A stretch of DNA of 62,857 nt, filler included, from Klebsormidium nitens (taxonomy: Eukaryota > Plantae > Klebsormidiophyceae): NCBI GenBank assembly GCA_000708835.1. It is 11 parts of 11 records of this genome, joined end to end, with 100 filler letters (N's around TTAATTAATTAA, not from the genome) between each part and the next. Parts side by side here need not be neighbours in the genome. Positions count along the whole stretch, not along the records: positions 51,796 to 62,857 come from DF238142.1; 10 more parts are not named here. One strand, 5' to 3'. Shown one piece after another: positions 50,644 through 62,857 of the stretch. Every line of letters begins with the position of its first letter. The stretch's first letter is position 1. The position numbers were made by a program, and so were the translations under genes. The notes beneath the pieces are model-generated. The model saw only the letters and a list, made by a program, of their open reading frames with translations, searched no databases and was not told where the DNA came from.

Positions 50644-51949
50644 GGATGTCTAAGAAGGTAGAAAAGTCAGCTCATAGGCGTAGTTTAGTGCTTGCAGGAC
50701 GTAACCAAGATACGGAATCTTAGAAACATTGTTGAGCAGCGTAGCCTATGTTGAGCTGAGGCTGCTATGGCCTGGTTCGCATGGAAGTTGCTCGTTGTTT
50801 GGGAGGGGTTGGACGTCCTGCTTTTCCTACATTTTCTGGGAGAAATTGGGGCTTGTTTGGTTTGTGGAATTTGCTTCAAAGCTAGAGGGGAGCCGCCCCT
50901 TTTGATTGGCCTCACCTTTTGTCTTCGACCTGCAACAAGAGCAGCTAAGACGACAGAGTGACTCCATTTCTACTTGAACGTCTGTAAGAGTGAAGATAAA
51001 ATACTCTCGATAGCAAGTTTTCCCATCTCAGTAGGGTGTGTGAATTAGGGAACTATGCAAAAGTACCAGCGTAACACTACATTTGCCACCATTTCCACCA
51101 TGCTTGCAACATGATGTTGAGAATTCACAGCATGATGCCTCACATGGTTTGAGCTTTTCATCAAGCAACGCCTGTAGCCAAGCACTCATGCACGTGCAAT
51201 CTTTTGGTGCGCTCATCGTGTTGCTCTGAGTTGCTCTATATACATACTTGAAGCGTAGTTAAAAGGGCCGTTATATATCTCCGATATCATTAGTCGGCAA
51301 AAGAGAACGCAACAGAACTAAAATACCGGTACTAATCATGATAGCACCTCTTTTCATCAGGGCAATTAACGGGCATGCGCATGGGCTCCACTTGAGGATC
51401 ACGTCAACTCGAGTGACCCAAAGGCTTAGTATTAGAAAACACGTAGTTACCAGTCGCTCGCTGACATGTGCTGCAAGAGTGTTTATAATACAGTTTAAGA
51501 TTTGGGAACCCGAATTACTTATTAAGCCGATTTAGTAAGGTCGAACTTTCCCTTATCCGCAGATTCAAAACCCTATTACCCGTGGGACAGAAATGTGAAG
51601 ACGTCTTCATGCATATCTCATGCTTCGCTCCATCTTTTTGCGATCCGTCTTTTGCACATGAAAGGATACATCAAAAGGTACCTCGTAAACTTTAGNNNNN
51701 NNNNNNNNNNNNNNNNNNNNNNNNNNNNNNNNNNNNNNNTTAATTAATTAANNNNNNNNNNNNNNNNNNNNNNNNNNNNNNNNNNNNNNNNNNNNGCTAC
51801 CGGGGGATCCCCGCGAGGGGCTCGGAAAGCTAGCGCCGTTACATCATATAGGACTTTGCTTCTGTATTCATGGCCAAGGATGCGAGGAAGGCGAGCCTCT
51901 ATACCCAAATGTGATTCACAGGTGTTCCGACTCTGATCCCAAGTCTTCA

Positions 51950-54900
51950 CGTGCCTTCCCTGCAGTTCCACACAGTCTCCTTTGCGATGAGTGCACCTTT
52001 CCCGCAACCTTTGCGGTGCGCGGGGGCAAAGAAGGGGGCAACCTCAAGTGCTTTTGCGGTGTGCATCGCCTGTTCATACCTGGTTGCTTCAAGGTTGAGA
52101 CGGCCCGGGCAGGTGAGTTCTATGCTGCTGTTGTGTCGGCGCGCCGTGGCCTCCACAATTTGAACCCTGCACGGGTCACTCGTCCTAGAGCTGTGCTAGG
52201 TCCAAGCATGCGAATTTGCAAGTTTGCAAGTGTACATAATGGTTATCGACCACAAGCCTGGACCTGTTGTGCATGTAAGCGCTCGTCACTTGGAAAAACA
52301 TGTTCTTCGTGCCCTTTCTTCAGAGTGGGCACGTGACTGCGAAGTGTTCAAGGTAAAGAAGGAGCTGGCGCGGGCGCTTGACGAGGAGGCGCGGCTCAAG
52401 GGCAATCGAGGTGAGGGTTTGTAAGCCTCCGGACAGTGCCGCAGAAAAAACGTGCCTCTTGCTTTGACGATCCTTGATTCGGTCCAGCTTGGATTCTGCG
52501 GCCAGTGCAACTACGGAAAGACTGTCAGGCTCTCCTCTATGCTGCCTCCCGTTAACCCTGAGAATGCTCATAGAGCTCGGAACCATTTGAGCTTGGCGCT
52601 GAGTCTGCTGCGAGTTCTCTATGTGTCATGCTCGGTCCAACCACCTTCTCTCTTCTCCACAGGTTGCAAAGGTTGCAACGATTGGCAGCAAAACGAATGC
52701 TGGTGGGATCCAACTCCCAAAAGCAGAGACCTGATTGGTAAGTCATTCTCTGGACGAGTCAATTCTGGCCTCATTCTGACGGACAAGAGGTCAAGCCTGG
52801 GCACCAAGTCTAGCGCGTGCCTGGTCACTCATTTAGGAGAGACAAAGTCAGGTCCTTGGTTTGCTCAACCTGGTAGCAGGACACTCAATTGGAGACTGAT
52901 CCAACTTGTTCAATTGCAAGAACTTTTGGTGAAAGCTGCCTGCTTCTGCGTAGCCGCTCTCCTTCGATGGTCGTGTGACCGGACAAGGGTCCCCAGGGGC
53001 GTATGGACGTCGGAAAGTATTCTGTCCGTTGCCCTTTTCTGCAGAAAAGCTCTTGATTATCGGCGGGGTTGAGAGCAATCCGGGATTCTCATCGACCGAA
53101 GGGGACCGTCCCCTAGCATCAGGAGGGGACACCCAGTGGACGACGTCGGCGCGGCCGGAGTAGTCGCTCAGCCGCCTCTTCACGATGTGAGCAAGCACCC
53201 GTCCGGGAGTGCTTTCAGAGTGATTATCGTTGTTGGATCAGGCCCCAGACAATTTGCACTGCCTTGAAGAAGTGACTGTATAGAAGCCGAAGTGCAAATT
53301 GACGGCAGCGGTCGGCTAGTGTTTCTGGATCAGGGCCCTGACAATTTGCACTGGCTTGAAAAAGCGATTGTATAGAACCCGAGGTGCAATTTGTCAGCCC
53401 ATGCATCTGGCTCTAGATCACGTTGGTTTCGAGGCAATGCGCAATTGATCGCCCCTCTGTCCACATAAACCGACTCCCAACGACGCTGTGTGCCGCTTTA
53501 GAAACGTCAAACGCCCAAGCTAGGGTCGAAGTCCAACAGATTCCGCGCGCATCTTTGTTGCAGGCAAGAGACCGCCCTGAGGATTGGCAACACGCCAGCG
53601 GAGACCAGTCGCAGGGATTGGCATCCGGTGTCGGCACGAAGAGGCCGCCAGAGCAGGTAAAAGCCCCACCCACAGGTTCACTGTAATTCCCTCCACGAGT
53701 TTTTGAAGCTGCGTTTCGTGATCAGGCTGCCAAGATTTGGTCGTTGCTTCAGGAAGCTGGTCAGCACGTGGGCCTGAATCGCATCATCCAACTTATTGGA
53801 TAGGGGCTTGTGTACAGGTGTCAGCAGAGGCAGAACCGCCGAGGAGGAGGGGGAGGAGGAGACTCGTCAAGGCTCTCTGAGCTTAGGGGCGAAGCCCCTG
53901 CAGACCTTCGCACAGGCAGCGTGACCGAACCGATTTCTGGCGCCCCCATACAGTGAGCACCTATGCTGGGATCCATTCAAGACACGCATGGCGCATGAAG
54001 TCGCGCATCAGTCTCTGTCAGTTGCCTCTACGGAGCTTGAGCTCGTCACAGCGGGGCTCTTTCAGTTATTGATTGCTTGTGCATCAAGTCATAGGTCTGT
54101 ATGACGGACCCTCTAAGGCTTGCTTTCCTTCTCTTCGATATCAGGAAAGTGGAAGACCTTGAGGAGGACCTCAGTGGATCGTTCGAGCGGGCCGCGGGCA
54201 GCCGCCGCGATGGGCGCAGGGCCATGGAGGAGCAAGTGGTTGCCGACTTCTTTGCAGAGCGCAGGCAGCAGCGAGAGGCTTGCGAGGCAAGAGAGGAGGA
54301 GACATTTGGCCCAATCTCCTTACCAGAGCGACATGATCGACATGATCTGGACGATCAAGAAAGGTGAGGCCCTGCTCTAGTATCCACTGCCTCCTTTAAA
54401 GGCGCTGTAGGCGATGAAGTCTTTTATCATGATCAGATAACAGGTTCTGCTCTCGCCCCCAAGCCGACCGCTTTGTTTCGATGTTTTGAATCGGGCCCCA
54501 AACCCAATTCTGGACTTGGTCTCGAGGTGTGCCCATTCGTCTCCGCCCGCTTTTGCAAAGTGGGTCATCAGAAGTTGATCGCTTCTTCCTACTGCAGCGG
54601 TGGTGCCGGGGCCCGAGAGCAGGAACTGCAGGGAAGGCGTAGCCCAGCAACCCCAGCTCCCGACCTGGTGAACCCGTTGCTTCCTTCCAAAAACTATTGG
54701 TGCATCTCCATTCTCGAGTCTGTGGACGGTCTTTTGGTGTTTCACTTGCATGATTTTGCGCTCAAGGCAAATCTGGCACGATCATGGCACTTTGACAAGG
54801 CATGCAGCAGCAATGCTTCAATTCCTCAATGCTTGCTGGAGTATTTTGCCTACCACCATTGGGCATCCTGACCGTTGCGGTTGCTGGTGCTCGCCCAAGG

Positions 54901-55450
54901 TTCACCCACTTTGCAATCTCGTTGCCCTTTCAGGCACGGAGCCAGGAGAGCGAAGCAAGGACGTCGACGCCGGGGGTCCAAACGACTGGTCGGCCGGCGT
55001 CGAAAAAACGACGGTAAGCTCTTTGACCCAGTATTTCTGCTCTAGACTTGTCATCTCCGACACAAAGGTGACGCTTGTGTGCTGGATGCCGCCAATTGCT
55101 CCCTTAGGTACCGCGAGCGTCAGGGGCGTCAAGGGTATCACTTGATTTCCCCAGAGTTCTTCCAAATTCCATAAGTGGCGAGCCGTCAATCGACAGTAGT
55201 CAAAATGCGTACAGCGTCTTGATACGCTCCTTCTTCTTCCGCATCTGCAGCAAAAAGGCGAAAGCGAATCCTGTCCCCATGGACGAGGCGGCTCGGGAGG
55301 CCGGTCGAGCGGCTGCGGCAGCTCATCTCCAAGCTGTGGGGGCATTGAGGCCCTCGAGAACGCAACGCGAGGGGCAAGCCGTTCATCAAACGGAGCTGGG
55401 TGATTTTGAAGGCCCGCCTCCTGCACCCCCCCTCGTAAGTTGCCATGGAG
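51950..55450 (+). CDS. Scattered hypothetical exons of unknown gene(s) upstream of the primase-helicase gene
   Basis: Segments bounded by plausible splice sites: CDEC...CFCGVH (about 51985-52110), 52270-52410, 53045-53163, 54140-54363, 54935-55014, 55250-55420. Exon chain not resolved. Confidence 0.35.
53247..53396. repeat. Two diverged copies of the 57-58-bp inverted-repeat core seen at 23.9-24.3 kb
   Basis: GACAATTTGCACTG...TGTATAGAA...GTGCAAATTGAC (53248-53303) and TGACAATTTGCACTGGCTT...TGTATAGAAC...GTGCAATTTGTCA (53339-53396). Confidence 0.88.
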
Positions 55451-55574
55451 AATGCCTTTTTCCTGCAGAGGCCGGAGTAGACTTCTGTGTGCGCATCTGA
55501 TTGCCGCTACTGACCTCGCTTGATTAGCTCGTGCGAGCTCTAAGTTTGACTTCGACTTAGTTCCACCAGACCTA

Positions 55575-55990
55575 GGCTGTTTTGGGGGGCGCGAGGTTGT
55601 TTTCGGGTCTGCTCTGGGCACCTGATTTCGAAGCCGTGGTCAAGTTGATTGAGGTCGCAGGCAGGCTGTTTTGGGGGGCGCGCTTAGGTTGATTTCGGGT
55701 CTGCTGTGGGCCTGGTTTTTGGGGCTGGTTTGGGGCCGCGGTCAAGTTGGTCTTGGGGAGCGCAGTCAGGATGTTTTTGTGCCGCAATTAGGCTGGTTCC
55801 GGGTCTGGTCCGGGCCTGATTTGGGGCTGATTTCGGGGCTGGTTTGGGGCCGCGGTCAAGCTGGTCTTGCGGGCGTGGTCAGGCTGACCAGTTCTGTGCT
55901 GTGGTCAGGCTGGTTCCGGGCTTGTTGGTTTGCTCTTGGCCTGGTTTGGGGCTTTTTTTGGGGCCGTGCTCAAGCTGATTTGGAAGCGCA
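55575..55990. repeat. Degenerate G/T-rich intronic minisatellite (core GGGCCGCGGTCAAG), recurring at about 60435-60535 and 61465-61850
   Basis: GGGGCCGCGGTCAAG(C/T)TGGTCTT at about 55733 and 55846; variants at 55961, 61474, 61563, 61610, 61768, 61791. Confidence 0.8.
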
Positions 55991-56170
55991 CTCAGGCTTG
56001 TCTTGTGCCGTGGTTAGTTGGCAGGCAGCCCCGTGTAGCTGGCGCGCTTTAATCTGAAGTTAAGTTTCAAGTGTTGTCAGCCATGCGGCTTTGCTGACAA
56101 TAGGGGCGTTGTAGGTAGCAAGCCTCATCGCTGCACAACCGACCAAGTTCGAACCCCTTCTGTTGTCTTT

Positions 56171-56844
56171 TTGGCACAGGCGCTGGTGACGGACGCTCCC
56201 ATTTCAAACGTCGGGGCCCTGGTCGACCGCCTGAAGGCCAAGCGGGACGCCGAAGAGGCGGCCGCGCGAGAGGAGCGGCTCAAACGCTACGGGCGCACGC
56301 GACCCCTAGGGGCTCCACGTGGGACGGGGGATTATGCCTCGGCCCGGGCCCTGGACCAGGACCCAAGCCCCTCTTCCCCTCTGCCCTCTCTCGTCCTTCC
56401 TTCCCAGGAGGAAGACCCCGCCCTGAGCGCAGCGCAGCCCCCCACAGCAGCCCCCTCTTCACTGGTCGCGGAAGATGAACGGGCCCCGCCGTCGCCGCCG
56501 CCGCCGGCCGACCGGCCCCCCGTAGACGAAGATCCGGGTTCGGTTTCCCTGTCGCAGCCCCATGAGCCCCCCTCCCACGCCGGGCACCCACCCTCTCCCC
56601 CCCCCGCTGACCAGCCCCAGGAGCCCCTTGTCATAGCCCCGCTTCCCGACGAAAACCCACGGCCCGAGGTGGTCCCCGGTCAGCCCCCAGCAGTCGCACT
56701 TTCCCCTCCCTCCGCCCACCAGGAGTAGGCGCCCGACGACCAGGCGCTTGCAGCCGACCTGTCAAACCAGCCCTCGAACACAAGTCGGCCCACTACAGCT
56801 GAGCCGTCCGCAGAACTGTCGTCCGCACTTCCGCCCACGGAGGC
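56171..56844 (+). pseudogene. Pro-rich exon with an in-frame premature stop
   Basis: Frame stays GC3-rich and open after TAG at 56726-56728 (QE*APDDQALAADLS...) up to the N gap. Confidence 0.5.
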
Positions 56845-57108
56845 NNNNNNNNNNNNNNNNNNNNNNNNNNNNNNNNNNNNNNNNNNNNNNNNNNNNNNNN
56901 NNNNNNNNNNNNNNNNNNNNNNNNNNNNNNNNNNNNNNNNNNNNNNNNNNNNNNNNNNNNNNNNNNNNNNNNNNNNNNNNNNNNNNNNNNNNNNNNNNNN
57001 NNNNNNNNNNNNNNNNNNNNNNNNNNNNNNNNNNNNNNNNNNNNNNNNNNNNNNNNNNNNNNNNNNNNNNNNNNNNNNNNNNNNNNNNNNNNNNNNNNNN
57101 NNNNNNNN

Positions 57109-57642
57109 CTGTGGTCGAGACGTGGAGAGACGCGAAATCGATATATAAATTACGGAAGCGCCTTAGTGTGCATCCAGTCGACAGCTTTTTGGATGCATAG
57201 CCGAGCGGCTAAGGCGGTCGGCTTCCGTACTGTTACAATGGTATCAGAGGTCGAGACCTCCACGACGGAGGTCGCGGGTTCGAATCCCGTTCGAAGCATT
57301 TCGGCGCCTTCTTGGTCGCAAGTCTGAATCGGGGCAACTCGGGTCGCACCGGCGACTCCCGGGCCTGGCCTAGGTTACGCGGACCTAGGGGGGGGTTGTT
57401 ACGCTCGAGGACGAGCTTGGTCCAAGGGGGGAGGAATGTAACGGCGGGTTAGCGGTGAAACGCGTGAACCCGTATACGGTCCAAAGCGGAACGAAAATCG
57501 ACGCGATAACCCGGCCGCGACGCGCGGACGGCCGACGCGAAATCGATATATAAATTACGGAAGCGCCTTAGTGTGCATCCAGTCGACAGCTTTTTGGATG
57601 CATAGCCGAGCGGCTAAGGCGGTCGGCTTCCGTACCGTTACA
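57109..57642 (+). mobile_element. Terminal-repeat retrotransposon in miniature (TRIM) carrying a tRNA-like sequence
   Basis: 5' LTR end GTTACA at 57237 (its start lies in the N gap); PBS TGGTATCAGAG 57239-57249; about 200-bp non-coding interior; PPT AAGGGGGGAGGAA 57424-57436; 3' LTR 57437-57642 with TGTAACGG...CCGTTACA; 57129-57237 matches 57534-57642 except one base. Confidence 0.9.
57191..57298 (+). promoter_or_regulatory. Split tRNA-like Pol III type-2 promoter: A box in LTR, B box after the PBS
   Basis: A box TAGCCGAGCGG 57198-57208; B box GGTTCGAATCC 57277-57287 inside a T-arm, preceded by a CCTCC/GGAGG variable arm. Acceptor stems do not pair, so this is not a functional tRNA gene. Confidence 0.75.
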
Positions 57643-60600
57643 CTCCAAGCTTGCGAGGCGCACGGTTCAGCGCGGCCCCCGAAGCAAGAGTTCAAGTATA
57701 GCGTGCACGAGGTGCTGGAGGGGTTCTACTTGAGGGGGCTGGAAGCCAGGAGGGCATTTGGGAAGGCTTTTGGGTGCTTCTTGGAGAATCCCCCGGACGA
57801 CCTGAAGCCGAGTGTTGAGCTCTTGCGGAAGGACGGCGGATCCGACTACGTGTGGGACGGGTCCGTCTACGGGCGTCACCGGTGCTTCCGAATGCTCAGG
57901 TCCTCCAAGTTTGGGGACCGTCTTCGCTCCCTCATCCCCTCCGAGGGCAGCTCTGAGGCGATCGCTGACCACCTTGTTTGTCTTTACACGGAAGCGGAGC
58001 TGGCTGGTTCCACCGAGATCAGCGCCGACCTTCTCAGAGAGTGGGCGTCCGCGCGGCGCGACCCTCTTGCCCCGGCCCGCGTGGGGGCCTTCCGGCAGAG
58101 CGCGCTCGCCCTCGACGAGGCGAGCACCTCGGAGGGGCCCGGCGAGGACCTGAGCGCGCAAGAGCGCGCCATCCTCCTCGCCCGCTACCAGGAGGACCAC
58201 GCAGGGGCCGAGACCGGGTGGTGCAGGAGCGGCCGGGGCTTTTCTTCGTCCACTTTCGCGCGCCCCAGCCCACGTGTTGCATTGCGGGCAGGCGCCACAC
58301 GTCCCCAGGCAACCAGAACCCGTACGTGATCTACAAGCGAGACGAGCCGCGCATCGCCCGCTACCAGTGCTTTGCAAACAGTTGCAGGTAAGGCGCCCCA
58401 GTAGTGAGCTTGAAATCTGGAAAGCGCGCGGCATGGCTTGGCCGTCAATCTGCACATGTCGTTCTTTACACCCAATTCTATAAGGTGGTGCAGATTATCA
58501 AGCTCCCTTAAGCGGGTTGCCCGGGTTGCTTCCTTGAGTACGATTCTTTCAAAAACTATTTGAGAAAAAGGGGCCTGCGCTGCGACTTTCACACATGCCA
58601 AACCTTAGATGCAGATTGTCGAGCTCCTTACGCAGGGTCCGGTTCTAGCAACGGGTTTGGTTTCAGAGTGGGGTTGGTCCGAGCTCTTCAAAAAAAACAT
58701 CCGGCAGTATGCATGCATGTCGTTTCTACAGCAACATTGAAAGAGAATAGAATGACGAATTCTTTGAGTAGGGCTGGTCTCAAACGTTCGATTTTTGATT
58801 TGTGACCATTTCGTGCAGTCAGGCTGGCGCGTGCTAGGCTTGTTGTCGTGGGACCAATCCTGGGCATGAAGCCTGGCGCGCGCCAGGTCAGTTAGTGCAC
58901 TGCCACGCGCCCTGTTGGTTTGTGAGCCTGGCGCGCGCCAGGTATATTAGTCAGTCGGTCTGGTGCCCGTCTGGTTAGTTAGTCAGCTTGGCGCATATGC
59001 ACCAGACTTCGTGGATGGGCACAAAGCTTTGACACCAAACTTGGCGCGTCTCAGGTTGGTTAGTGAGCCTGGCGCGCGCCAGGTTGATTAGTTTGTCAGC
59101 ATGGCTTGTAACAAGCTTAATGCCCAGAACACCAAGTTTGGCATATGCCATCTGAATCAACATGTGAGCCTGGCGCGCGTCAGGTAGCAAGCCTGGCGCG
59201 CGTCGGATCTGTTAATGGAGGCTAGCGCTCTCCAGACTTGATGCTTTGGACACCAAGCTTGGCGCACGCCAGGTCAATTGAGCTGGCGCACGCCTGCTCA
59301 ATGATGCAGATTGGTTCACGTCAGACGAAGTGCTCAGTCACCAAGACTGGGCACACTGTCTGGTACGCGCCAGCTCAGTTTGTAGACATGGCGCAGGTAC
59401 TTGGTATGTTGTTGACTGCACCGTTCGCCCCATCTTTGCAGGGGCGAGTGCCGGGTGCTACCCCTGGATGTCCGCACCGCGCTGGGCTGGACAGACTCGG
59501 GACTACGAGGAGAATCTGAAGATGCGCCCTTACCCCGTCTTCGAGCTCGCCCGTCTTCGCAAACGCACCATCCTGGTGTCCGCCAAAAAGGGGGTCGGGA
59601 AGTCGAAGGGTTTCATGGAGTGGCTGGTGGCCATAGTAGTCAGGAGAAACCCCGGCCTCTCCTTCGTCCTGATCGGGGCCAACATCTCGCTGTCCCGCAA
59701 GTACCATCAAGATCTGGTGGACGCGGGCGTTCAAGGCGTGGTGCTGTACCTGGAGGCGCCCCCAGGGCCAATCACTGCCTCTCGTGCCGTGGTCTGCATC
59801 AACTCCATTCACCGCGTGCGCGCCAAAATGGACGTCGTGGCGTTGGACGAGATGGACATGGTGCTCACCAACCTCAACTCTGAGGTCATGAGCCAACGGG
59901 GCCGGGTGCTGTCCTGCTTGGAGGCGGCTGTGGCGGGGGCGAAAGTCGTCATCGGCATGGACGCCAACATCGACTGCGCGCGAGTGATGGAGTACCTCTT
60001 CATGGCGCGGCCGGATGGGGTCCTCCACACCATCCGGAACAGGGGCCTGTACCCGGCCAAGCGGCAAGCGACCATCCGGATCTTTCCGCCAGGGAGCGGG
60101 CTGCTCGACTGCATCGGCGCCGCAGTACGGGATGTGCTGGACAGGGTCGCTCGAGGCACGAAAGTCGTCGTGAGTTCTTCTTAAGATCCTCCTAGCACTA
60201 ACAAGCCTTAGCACAGCGCGCTCGATTTCATCCCTGTGCTCTTCTCAAGCACAATGAGAGAGCGTCTATGTCCAAGGTATAAGGCAAGCCATGCGTAGCA
60301 TCTTCTCTGCATATTCACCTTGTGGCTTTGGGGATAGGTGTAGCATGGAGCAGCTCTTTCTGTGCACTCCACCAATGATGCATCGGAGCCTAGTGGAAAC
60401 TGTCTTGCCAAACATTCATGACACGGTTTGTCTTCTGGGGCCGTTTTGGGGGGCAACTTTGGTGAAGGGCCAGTTCGGAGGATAGTTTTAGGGCCAGTTT
60501 TGATGAGCCTGAGAGTCGGTTTGGAGCCAGTTTCAAATTGAGTGTAGGCCAGTGCGAACGGGTCTCTGTAAGGAACGATCGCATCAGTCGCTTTTGCCTT

Positions 60601-62836
60601 AGGTCTTTACGTTCTAAAAAGCTGACGACCGTGCTCTCGACTCTTGTTGCGCAGTGCCCGTCGACCTCCAAGCGCTTCGTGAAACACCTCGAACACGATT
60701 TCAACGTCGAGAACCCACCCTCCGAGTCCGATCGACGCGGCGTTTTCCTGCACGCCGACAAGAGGTCGAAAGCCGACGAGGAGTTCTTCCAGAAGGCGAT
60801 GGCCGACCCTGACACCTACTTGGAAGCGGAGTGTGTGGCTTTTTCTCCAAAGCTCGGCCCAGGTGTTTCGAAAGAGAAGCCGTACGCTGAGGAGACGGTC
60901 GCCTTCGCCCTCAACAACCTCAACGGCCCCGCCTTTGAGACGCTGCTCCAGCAGCATGCTCGCTTCCGGACGGTCACTAACTCCACCATCTACTACAAGC
61001 AGGCGGTGAGCACTGCAGTGGACCTGCCGCGCTCTACAGAGGCGGTCTTTCAAGCCATCGAGCGGGACGACAAGCAGATCGTCAAGATGCTCGGCGACGC
61101 GGCCGGCTTCCAGTTCCTGAGGGGTTCGCAGGGCATCTGCGACCGCTCCTCGGCGAGCTGCGTCTTGTACGCAAACAACATTCTGGCCAAGGTGGAAAGC
61201 TATCTGGAGTACGTGCCGAAGCTGAAGGCCGACCTCGAAAAGCAGGGCTACGAGGTGACGGTCGAGCACGTCGAGCCAACGTTGAGACTGCCGAGTAGTG
61301 AGGCGAAACCTGAAAAGCGCCCGGCATGGCTCGGTCGACAATCTGCACAGGTTGTTCTTTATAATCAAGTCTATTAGGTGGTGCACACAGATTGTCAAGC
61401 CCCTCAGGTGGCCCTTACAGTTGCAATGATCAACTAGTAGGCTTGAGTAGGGTTAAGCTAATGGACTGCTTTTGGGCCGCGGTCAGCATGATCTCGGGGC
61501 AAGGTCAGGCTGGTTTGGTGTTTGCTGTGGGCATTGGTTTTGGTCGGGTGTGGGCTTGGGTTTGGGGCACGGTCAAGCTGTTTTGGGGTGGGGCTTCAGG
61601 CTGATTTGTGGCCGCGGTGAGGCTGGTTCCGAAATTGCTGTGGGTCTGGTTCCGGGGCAGGTTTTGGGGCCGTTAACGAGCAGACTTGGGTGCGCAGTCA
61701 GGCTGATTTTGAAAGCGCGTTTAGGCTGGTTCGAGTCTGCCGTGGCCTGGATTTGGGACTACTTTTGGAGCCGCGATCAAGTTGGTCTTTGAGGCGCGGT
61801 CAGGCTGGTTCTGGTGCGGTGCGTAGTCTGGTTCCGGATTTGCTGAGCCTGGTTTGGCGGATGTTTTTGAGGTCCTTAGAACTTGCAGAGCATAACGTCT
61901 TTTGAGGAGTCGAGATTTAGGGCTCACCCCGCCACCGGACTGTGTTTGCTCCCGTGGAATGATCGGACGTCCCACCATTTCCTTTCCAGGACGGCGTCGG
62001 GAGCCCGCCCCCGGAGGTGCCCCTCGGCTTCGACGCGGAGCCGGAGCTCCTGACCGCCGAAGAGTGGCGAGCAAAGTACATCATCAGCTCGGAGCAGTAC
62101 GAGATCCTGTGCGAAAGGCCTGAGAACCTGAGCCCAAAGGAGCAGCTCCAGGAGTTTCTGTTCGAGATGGTCACGAAGGAGTACAAGGTCGACCCCAGCC
62201 GGGTTGATCACGACTTCTACACCCGCTTTTGCGCTGACGAGGACGAGGCGAAGGCGACAAGAGAGGCCCACGCAAACTATCTCAGGTAGGCGCCTCATTT
62301 CCCAGCTGTGCCCCGTCTCTGAAGCAAGAATCGTAGCCCTCTTGCCGCCATCCACTTCTGTCCAAAGTGAACGATTAGTGAACTCCAAGTCTGCAGCATT
62401 TGTCCAGGGCCAAGGTTTCCGCTCATCATTCTTCTTCAGCGGCAATGACGTCGTACGTCCGAAGTCTCATTTTGCTACCCCTCTGACCCTTCTCGTGACT
62501 TGCAGGTTTCGTGAGCACCGCTTCGATGCCCTCGTCGCGGACCTGGACAGAGCACGTGGGCATGCCAACGAGGAGGGCGTGGTTCAGGAGTCCGTTCAGG
62601 AAATGCGCGACCCTGCCAGCCGTGTGCCGTTTGCGGTGCGCGTGCTTGCCTTTCTCGTTGAATGCAGGGAGGAGCAGCTGAATCATGAGGCGGAGCGGTG
62701 GGAGGTCTCGGATGAGCGCGTTCAGGCTGCCTATGCGGAGCACATCGGGCCCAGCAAGACCCGGTTGAAGACCATCTTCAACCTGTATTGCTTTGTGCAG
62801 CAGACCTCCAGACCCTCGCAGGCTGCCAATGGAAAG
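57643..62836 (+). pseudogene. Spliced AEP/PrimPol primase - UL52-type zinc finger - UL9-like SF2 helicase fusion gene, disrupted; continues past the window end
   Basis: Exon 57643-58387: KYSVH, WDGSVYGRHRCFRMLRSSKFG, CCIAGRRH..N...YQCFANSC. Exon 59442-60169: MRPY, SAKKGVGKS, VALDE, GMDAN, GTKVV. Exon from 60655 to about 61254: CPSTSK, FSPKLGPGVS, QQHARFR. Exons 61990-62285 and 62506-62836. Frameshifts near 58210 and 59490. Confidence 0.85.
58820..59310. repeat. Intronic array of palindromic CCTGGCGCGCGCCAGG motifs
   Basis: Perfect 16-bp palindromes at 58872, 58927 and 59068; about 6-7 degenerate copies nearby. Confidence 0.88.
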
Positions 62837-62857
62837 GTGAGGGAGAAGAAAGCTCGG

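Follow-up and report, generated by a model that had tools for sequence, protein, structure and literature searches.

Cassandra, Helenus and Ajax are the counterparts of SINEs in the world of LTR elements. In all the small-RNA-gene-derived LTR elements known to us, the Pol III module lies wholly within the LTR, and so every solo LTR keeps it. The Helenus elements (TRIMp3; for example, Helenus-1_SMo of Selaginella) are short and non-coding and combine tRNA-derived A and B boxes with an iMet-type PBS and a PPT (PMC10886601). Their LTRs measure 100-320 bp and the whole elements 311-1263 bp; within Viridiplantae, they have been reported from Selaginella only, with none from Klebsormidium (Kojima 2024, PMC10886601). 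The animal Helenus elements were assigned to Gypsy partners by Kojima (PMC10886601). Cassandra harbours a 5S rRNA module, and its R is 18 bp long (PMC10886601). A further group of TRIMs, including Cassandra-like elements with TATA boxes, is of the Pol II type, the TATA box being read as a Pol II signal (PMC10853983).

We analysed a window of 62,857 nucleotides, namely 11 joined parts of the genome of Klebsormidium nitens (GCA_000708835.1), in which the piece at 51796-62857 (DF238142.1) contains a TRIM, i.e. a non-coding LTR retrotransposon with a projected length of ~611 bp, whose visible part occupies 57109-57642. Its U5, PBS and leader form a module derived from a class II tRNA, which is not a tRNA gene. 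This module is split by the LTR/PBS boundary. The split layout is unusual, and the closest known kind of element is Helenus/TRIMp3. Full-text literature searches revealed no description of a split tRNA layout. The features of the locus are as follows.

56845-57108, no strand: assembly gap of 264 N, which conceals ~77 nt at the start of the 5' LTR, the TSD and ~393 nt of host exon.
57109-57237, plus strand: visible part of the 5' LTR, of which 57129-57237 matches the 3' LTR.
57142-57149, with a second copy at 57547-57554, plus strand: TATA box TATATAAA of putative function, from sequence reading.
57151-57229, plus strand: LTR hairpin with three helices (9/9, 7/7 and 7/7 pairs), from folding (z = -3.5).
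57186-57190, with a second copy at 57591-57595, plus strand: T5 run directly 5' of GGATGCA, from sequence reading.
57191-57237, plus strand: tRNA-like 5' half, the last 47 nt of the LTR, with acceptor-like GGATGCA, A box (57198-57208), D arm (57200-57216), anticodon-like stem strand (57218-57222) and att terminus GTTACA (57232-57237).
57221-57298, plus strand: alternative class I-like cloverleaf (Rfam, 22.8 bits), its 5' acceptor strand GCTTCCG (6/7 pairs) coming from the LTR end.
57239-57249, plus strand: PBS TGGTATCAGAG, 11 nt, iMet type, one base past the end of the 5' LTR.
57250-57298, plus strand: tRNA-like 3' half, made of the 49 nt that directly follow the PBS, with anticodon-like strand (57250-57254), variable arm (57257-57271), T arm (57274-57290), B box (57277-57287) and TCGAAGC plus a discriminator-like A (57291-57298).
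57404-57436, plus strand: 3' cis module made of CTCGAGGACGAG, an 8-nt spacer and the PPT, from sequence reading and motif comparison.
57424-57436, plus strand: PPT AAGGGGGGAGGAA, abutting the TGTAAC of the 3' LTR.
57437-57642, plus strand: complete 3' LTR of 206 bp, from the repeat alignment, with inverted termini TGTAAC..GTTACA and an A box (57603-57613) without a B box.
57643-58284, plus strand: host exon resuming after the 3' LTR (KFL_011500010 residues 766-980, 82% identity).

Two short LTRs with TG..CA ends, a PBS, a PPT and the lack of coding capacity over 611 bp bear out the earlier note, which had called the locus a TRIM. The same holds for the iMet PBS that it had named: TGGTATCAGAG has no other exact match in the window, and its type is shared with Cassandra, in which the PBS is the same, TGGTATCAGAG(C), and with Helenus-1_SMo, the internal region of which begins with a close variant. 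The direct repeats 57129-57237 and 57534-57642 are identical at 108 of 109 positions, and their sole mismatch (T57231 versus C57636) lies in a CpG. This single difference between the LTRs indicates a young insertion. The start of the 5' LTR is projected at 57032, inside the gap. The 20 nt at the gap edge (57109-57128) align poorly with the 3' LTR, whereas the next 109 nt are 99% identical to it; this divergence could reflect a contig-end artefact or a rearranged 5' LTR. Divergent bases are typical of short-read contig ends in repeats. The string GGTCGAGAC, found in these 20 nt, occurs again at 57249-57257.

The longest ORF inside the TRIM encodes 53 aa. A 53-aa plus-strand ORF spanning the junction shares no word with any protein of the searched collection, and a 49-aa minus-strand ORF yielded, against 1.84 billion proteins, only a spurious match to a bacterial repeat adhesin (P0020). 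No Rfam ribozyme model matches the TRIM, including the hammerhead that defines retrozymes, nor does it contain a 5S rRNA as in Cassandra in Rfam scans to E = 10. The family is known here from a single copy: blastn revealed neither a further copy nor an empty site within the piece, none of the five metagenome loci retrieved with the 19-mer of the att/PBS junction is a family member, and four scans of viral contigs with LTR, A-box, T-arm and PPT patterns found no copies.

The TRIM is a true insertion, located within a coding exon of a primase-helicase gene that exists in multiple copies, as homology to the uninterrupted K. nitens paralogues restarts at the base after the LTR end. Thus, the homologues P0007-P0009, P0011 and P0015 align from 57637-57643 on, at most two codons from the LTR end, and the match of P0011 (KFL_011500010) begins exactly at 57643. 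The homologues have 89-128 more N-terminal residues (765-1059 in the full-length models) that are without a counterpart just upstream of 57643 before the TRIM. The match of P0011 residues 413-634 stops at 56842, just ahead of the gap, and that of residues 766-980 begins at 57643. The missing 131 residues must therefore be in the gap together with 77 nt of the LTR, and hence the TSD, expected to measure 5 bp in a plant element, is unreadable.

The piece 51796-62857 (plus strand, 55-60% GC) corresponds to one multi-exon gene, collinear with K. nitens KFL_011500010 (P0011) and KFL_001380210 (P0015, named 'replication origin-binding protein domain-containing') of ~1750-2050 aa. Over the matched stretches, identity to P0011 ranges from 35 to 95% and is at least 66% in all but one; these values come from exons compared singly by tblastn rather than joined into a spliced model. 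The gene codes for an AEP-primase-like part (WRIYFDxDY, SVHEV), a weak zinc finger of the Herpes_UL52 type (58212-58388, E = 0.05) and a Herpes_ori_bp SF2 helicase (59330-60184, E = 5e-17). Klebsormidium-like data contain multiple copies of the family, and the gene may be part of a virus-like or transposon-like unit. At 58212-58284, the alignments to K. nitens proteins overlap and pass from frame 1 into frame 3, which may denote a frameshift or a very short intron in this paralogue besides the TRIM. The intron just upstream of the helicase exon contains, at 58810-59380, ~10 palindromic units centred on CCTGGCGCGCGCCAGG, for which Rfam returned only a chance-level miRNA-like match. Two G/T-rich satellite blocks with a period of ~23 nt and units like GGGGCCGCGGTCAAGCTGGT (55560-56050 and 61460-61870) are found in different introns, ~5.7 kb apart.

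Two related chromovirus-type LTR retrotransposons on contigs of unrelated metagenomes, Ga0310811_10107361 (L002) and Ga0316217_10025154 (L004), carry a 19-mer, GTTACA-A-PBS-G, identical to the att/PBS junction of the TRIM and directly followed by a Ty3-type gag. In L004, an integrase and a chromodomain are encoded upstream of the same LTR. The order in this locus, i.e. integrase-chromodomain ORF, one LTR, PBS and gag, suggests tandem elements sharing an LTR. The PPT could be compared with that of L004, the locus in which one is present: the L004 PPT end, AAGAGGGGAGGAAT, differs from that of the TRIM at 1 of 14 bases, and GTACGCTCG is common to both, ~16 nt upstream. The L004 LTR, at ~210 bp, is also of similar length. 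In contrast, the LTR bodies of the TRIM and L004 are unrelated, and the Ty3/gypsy chromoviruses are autonomous (gag, integrase and chromodomain), with no tRNA-like signal at the L002 and L004 junctions.

The internal regions of Ajax-1_NGe, Helenus-3_CGi, Helenus-4_SaGl and Helenus-2_ArIr also end in the TCGAGGACGA motif that precedes the PPT. In the form (C/T)TCGAGGACGA(G/A), it is found ~8-14 nt before the PPT in nemertean Ajax, in bivalve Helenus (PMC10886601 Data S1) and in the TRIM, and this motif could be either a 3' cis element conserved in Ty3/gypsy or what is left of the pol end. The description of the 3' end as Gypsy chromovirus-type by the earlier note thus agrees with the PPT and its upstream motif, which match the chromodomain element L004 and several Gypsy-dependent TRIMp3 families. 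Since its replication cis modules are of the Ty3/gypsy chromovirus type, the TRIM is most likely mobilised in trans by a chromovirus, a partner that we infer from these modules.

The tRNA-like module is collinear with class II tRNAs over 57191-57298, from the acceptor strand to the discriminator, except for ~20-23 extra nucleotides. These are the LTR terminus and the PBS, and they lie in the anticodon loop: the anticodon-like stem TCGGC (57218-57222)/GTCGA (57250-57254), with 5/5 pairs, closes a 27-nt loop that holds GTTACA-A-PBS. Four stems of the module are fully paired, including the variable stem CCTCC/GGAGG and the T stem GCGGG/CCCGT (5/5 pairs each). In the 5' half, GGATGCA-TA is followed by a class II D-arm 17-mer (57200-57216), which is identical to the D arm, from tRNA position 10, of 19 prokaryotic tRNAs called by ARAGORN; 15 of them are class II tRNAs (10 Leu-CAA and 5 Ser). 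Both boxes, A and B, match perfectly; they stand where a canonical tRNA has them, at a distance of 68 nt from each other. The B box, GGTTCGAATCC, has one match in the window versus 0.10 expected, while the A-box consensus on its own is not above chance.

Most of what the earlier note had read at this junction stands, that is, a tRNA 5' half with an A box at the LTR end, a class II 3' half past the PBS, and the LTR end plus PBS located where an intron would be. Its statement that both boxes occur together only at the 5' junction is also correct: each LTR has an A box (57198-57208 and 57603-57613), and the sole B box (57277-57287) is internal. This follows from the LTR terminus and PBS occupying the intron position. 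The Leu-like character that it had proposed extends to the D arm, identical to those of Leu and Ser tRNAs, and to that arm only. In contrast, the split halves do not make up a tRNA, because the acceptor strands GGATGCA and TCGAAGC form only 3/7 pairs. Each of these strands has a better partner elsewhere, GGATGCA with the upstream TGCATCC (7/7) and TCGAAGC with GCTTCCG (6/7).

We compared these readings with the output of tRNA detectors. With its intron option, ARAGORN called 57189-57305 with a 16-nt intron at 37/38. This is its sole call in the piece, against 2 in 100 dinucleotide shuffles (0.02 per piece). In its default mode, it found no tRNA in the region. The Rfam tRNA model matched 57221-57298 with 22.8 bits, below the gathering score of 29 (E = 0.028 in a 592-nt search with all 4227 families). 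In a deletion scan, ARAGORN made a Leu(CAG)-like call only once ~16-20 nt (57226-57245) had been removed. Even then, the acceptor of the called tRNA was weak and its T arm non-canonical. A functional tRNA gene was ruled out by the negative result of default ARAGORN, the sub-threshold Rfam score and the 3/7 acceptor pairs.

These weak scores, i.e. the Rfam match under its threshold and the silence of default ARAGORN, would also be compatible with a chance likeness, or with an assembly artefact at a repeat beside a gap, given that the 5' LTR touches the N gap and that its first 20 visible nucleotides differ from the 3' LTR. We consider this very improbable. The LTR-PBS and LTR-host exon junctions are distinct and coherent, the D-arm 17-mer is that of real tRNAs at the correct offset, and ARAGORN calls with the intron option are rare in shuffled pieces. 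In addition, no tRNA signal was obtained at the two chromovirus-type junctions that share the att/PBS 19-mer, and therefore the signal is no by-product of the PBS.

The candidate signals for transcription are distributed as follows. The TATA box is canonical and located at LTR position ~111 of 206, 49 nt upstream of the tRNA-like +1. The only runs of at least four T in the TRIM are the two T5 runs, which are 405 nt apart. The hairpin in the last 80 nt of the LTR is strong, and its 5' arm repeats the tRNA-like 5' half in part and in inverted orientation, without the D hairpin and GGTCG. Upstream TATA elements are used by plant Pol III genes too, and thus the TATA box does not exclude Pol III; a plant type 3 Pol III promoter (USE/TATA) was discarded as its spacing does not fit.

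We slightly favour the view that Pol II makes the replicative RNA, a reading drawn from the arrangement of these signals, notably the T5 run between the TATA-predicted start and the A box. The contending view is that the U5 A box, together with the B box past the PBS, constitutes a working split Pol III promoter in a Helenus/TRIMp3-like element. TFIIIC would then bind only full-length copies, from which Pol III would make the replicative RNA, solo and 3' LTRs would be silent, and the T5 run in the 3' LTR would be the terminator and define a very short R. The perfect boxes at canonical positions argue for this, as do the recognition of the region by two tRNA detectors and the position of the sole T runs directly 5' of the tRNA-like +1 in both LTRs, just where a terminator would divide R from U5, at a distance that fits the sizes of Pol III-driven TRIMs (TRIMp3). 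A TATA box near -30 of a start set ~15-20 nt upstream of the A box would be in keeping with it as well, and the 18-bp R of Cassandra is a precedent (PMC10886601). However, the T runs also weigh against a Pol III promoter: being immediately 5' of the tRNA-like start, they imply that a transcript from +1 to the next T5 would have no R repeat for first-strand transfer, and with a start upstream of +1, T5 would come up in the initial ~15 nt, and Pol III would be expected to terminate there. The LTRs of Helenus that we saw contain the whole tRNA-like unit followed by a T run, and the A-box consensus by itself is at chance level. We therefore regard the split promoter as possible but unlikely. For Helenus, too, Pol III transcription is a prediction (PMC10886601).

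Whichever polymerase is used, the tRNA-like scaffold might act in the RNA, by presenting the PBS in the open 27-nt loop or by mimicking a tRNA, and so aid the annealing of the primer, packaging or the stability of the genomic RNA. Three stems with 5/5 pairs each (anticodon-like, variable and T) would be superfluous in a DNA promoter, and the PBS does lie in the loop closed by TCGGC/GTCGA; furthermore, 57150-57298 folds with z = -4.0. In the predicted minimum-energy fold, however, the LTR hairpin and the alternative pairing compete with the cloverleaf, and the acceptor stem is unformed. We know of no precedent for a tRNA-like scaffold acting at the RNA level in such an element, and we deem a role of this kind improbable.

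Taken as a whole, the explanation that we prefer, which we would give an even chance, is that of a young TRIM with chromovirus-type modules and a decayed tRNA scaffold, whose RNA would be made by Pol II and whose boxes would be relics or auxiliary. Its most economical origin would be that recombination or template switching put a chromoviral att/PBS module into the anticodon loop of a SINE-like head of tRNA origin. Reverse transcription would then turn everything upstream of the new PBS into LTR. Because any sequence between R and the PBS counts as U5, the 5' half would have become LTR and the 3' half would have stayed internal. Replicative RNA would start from the LTR TATA box at ~57170-57180 and have an ordinary R, and the A and B boxes would be a Pol III/TFIIIC site that is ancestral or, at the most, auxiliary, and that only full-length copies have in complete form. 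The perfect boxes and three further intact stems count against this reading, since a pure relic does not need them. Other origins were considered and rejected. A permuted tRNA gene does not fit, as no T arm precedes the upstream arm TGCATCC-A. The orientation and the stems, set against the plant iMet sequence, are at odds with read-through copying of the primer tRNA. Self-priming lacks a complement of the PBS in the LTR.

We found no sequence similarity to Helenus-1_SMo past the PBS and no 5S match, the two systems with which the earlier note had proposed to compare it. Its small size, lack of coding capacity, tRNA-derived A and B boxes, iMet-type PBS and PPT are those of Helenus. Nevertheless, Helenus has the entire tRNA-like unit in the LTR, whereas the TRIM has only the 5' half there, with the B-box half past the PBS, a T5 run before the unit and a TATA box in the LTR. 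The presence of both boxes inside the LTR defines Helenus/TRIMp3, and the TRIM falls outside this definition because its B box is internal. With Cassandra, it shares, besides the PBS, a Pol III module of small-RNA-gene origin, but in Cassandra this module is 5S rRNA and lies wholly in the LTR. The Pol II TRIMs resemble it in size, in the LTR/PBS/PPT layout and in the LTR TATA box, and they differ by the absence of a tRNA-derived module around the PBS (PMC10853983). Finally, intron-containing class II tRNA genes and tRNA-derived SINE heads have the D arm, anticodon-like stem, long variable arm and T arm in the same order, extra sequence at the 37/38 intron position, and A and B boxes. Unlike class II tRNA genes, the TRIM has an acceptor with 3/7 pairs, an anticodon without class II identity and, as its 'intron', the LTR terminus plus the PBS. 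It is not a SINE, as it has no LINE-type tail.

In its most complete form, the Pol III proposal would be that of a promoter assembled only across the 5' LTR-PBS junction, with the att end and PBS at the intron position of a class II tRNA-like unit, full copies competent, solo and 3' LTRs inert, and T5 setting a minimal R. We hold this to be doubtful. If it were true, TRIMp3 would gain a third layout and a first case from a streptophyte alga, and the division of the module at the LTR/PBS boundary would tie the competence of the promoter to an intact element. Should the boxes be inactive, the locus is still a recent TE insertion breaking a paralogue of a large Klebsormidium primase-helicase gene family. 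tRNA predictors with intron options will call such LTR/PBS junctions. The split layout would show one route to such elements, in which a PBS inside a tRNA-like head redefines the LTR, and tRNA-bearing TRIMs now extend to streptophyte algae.
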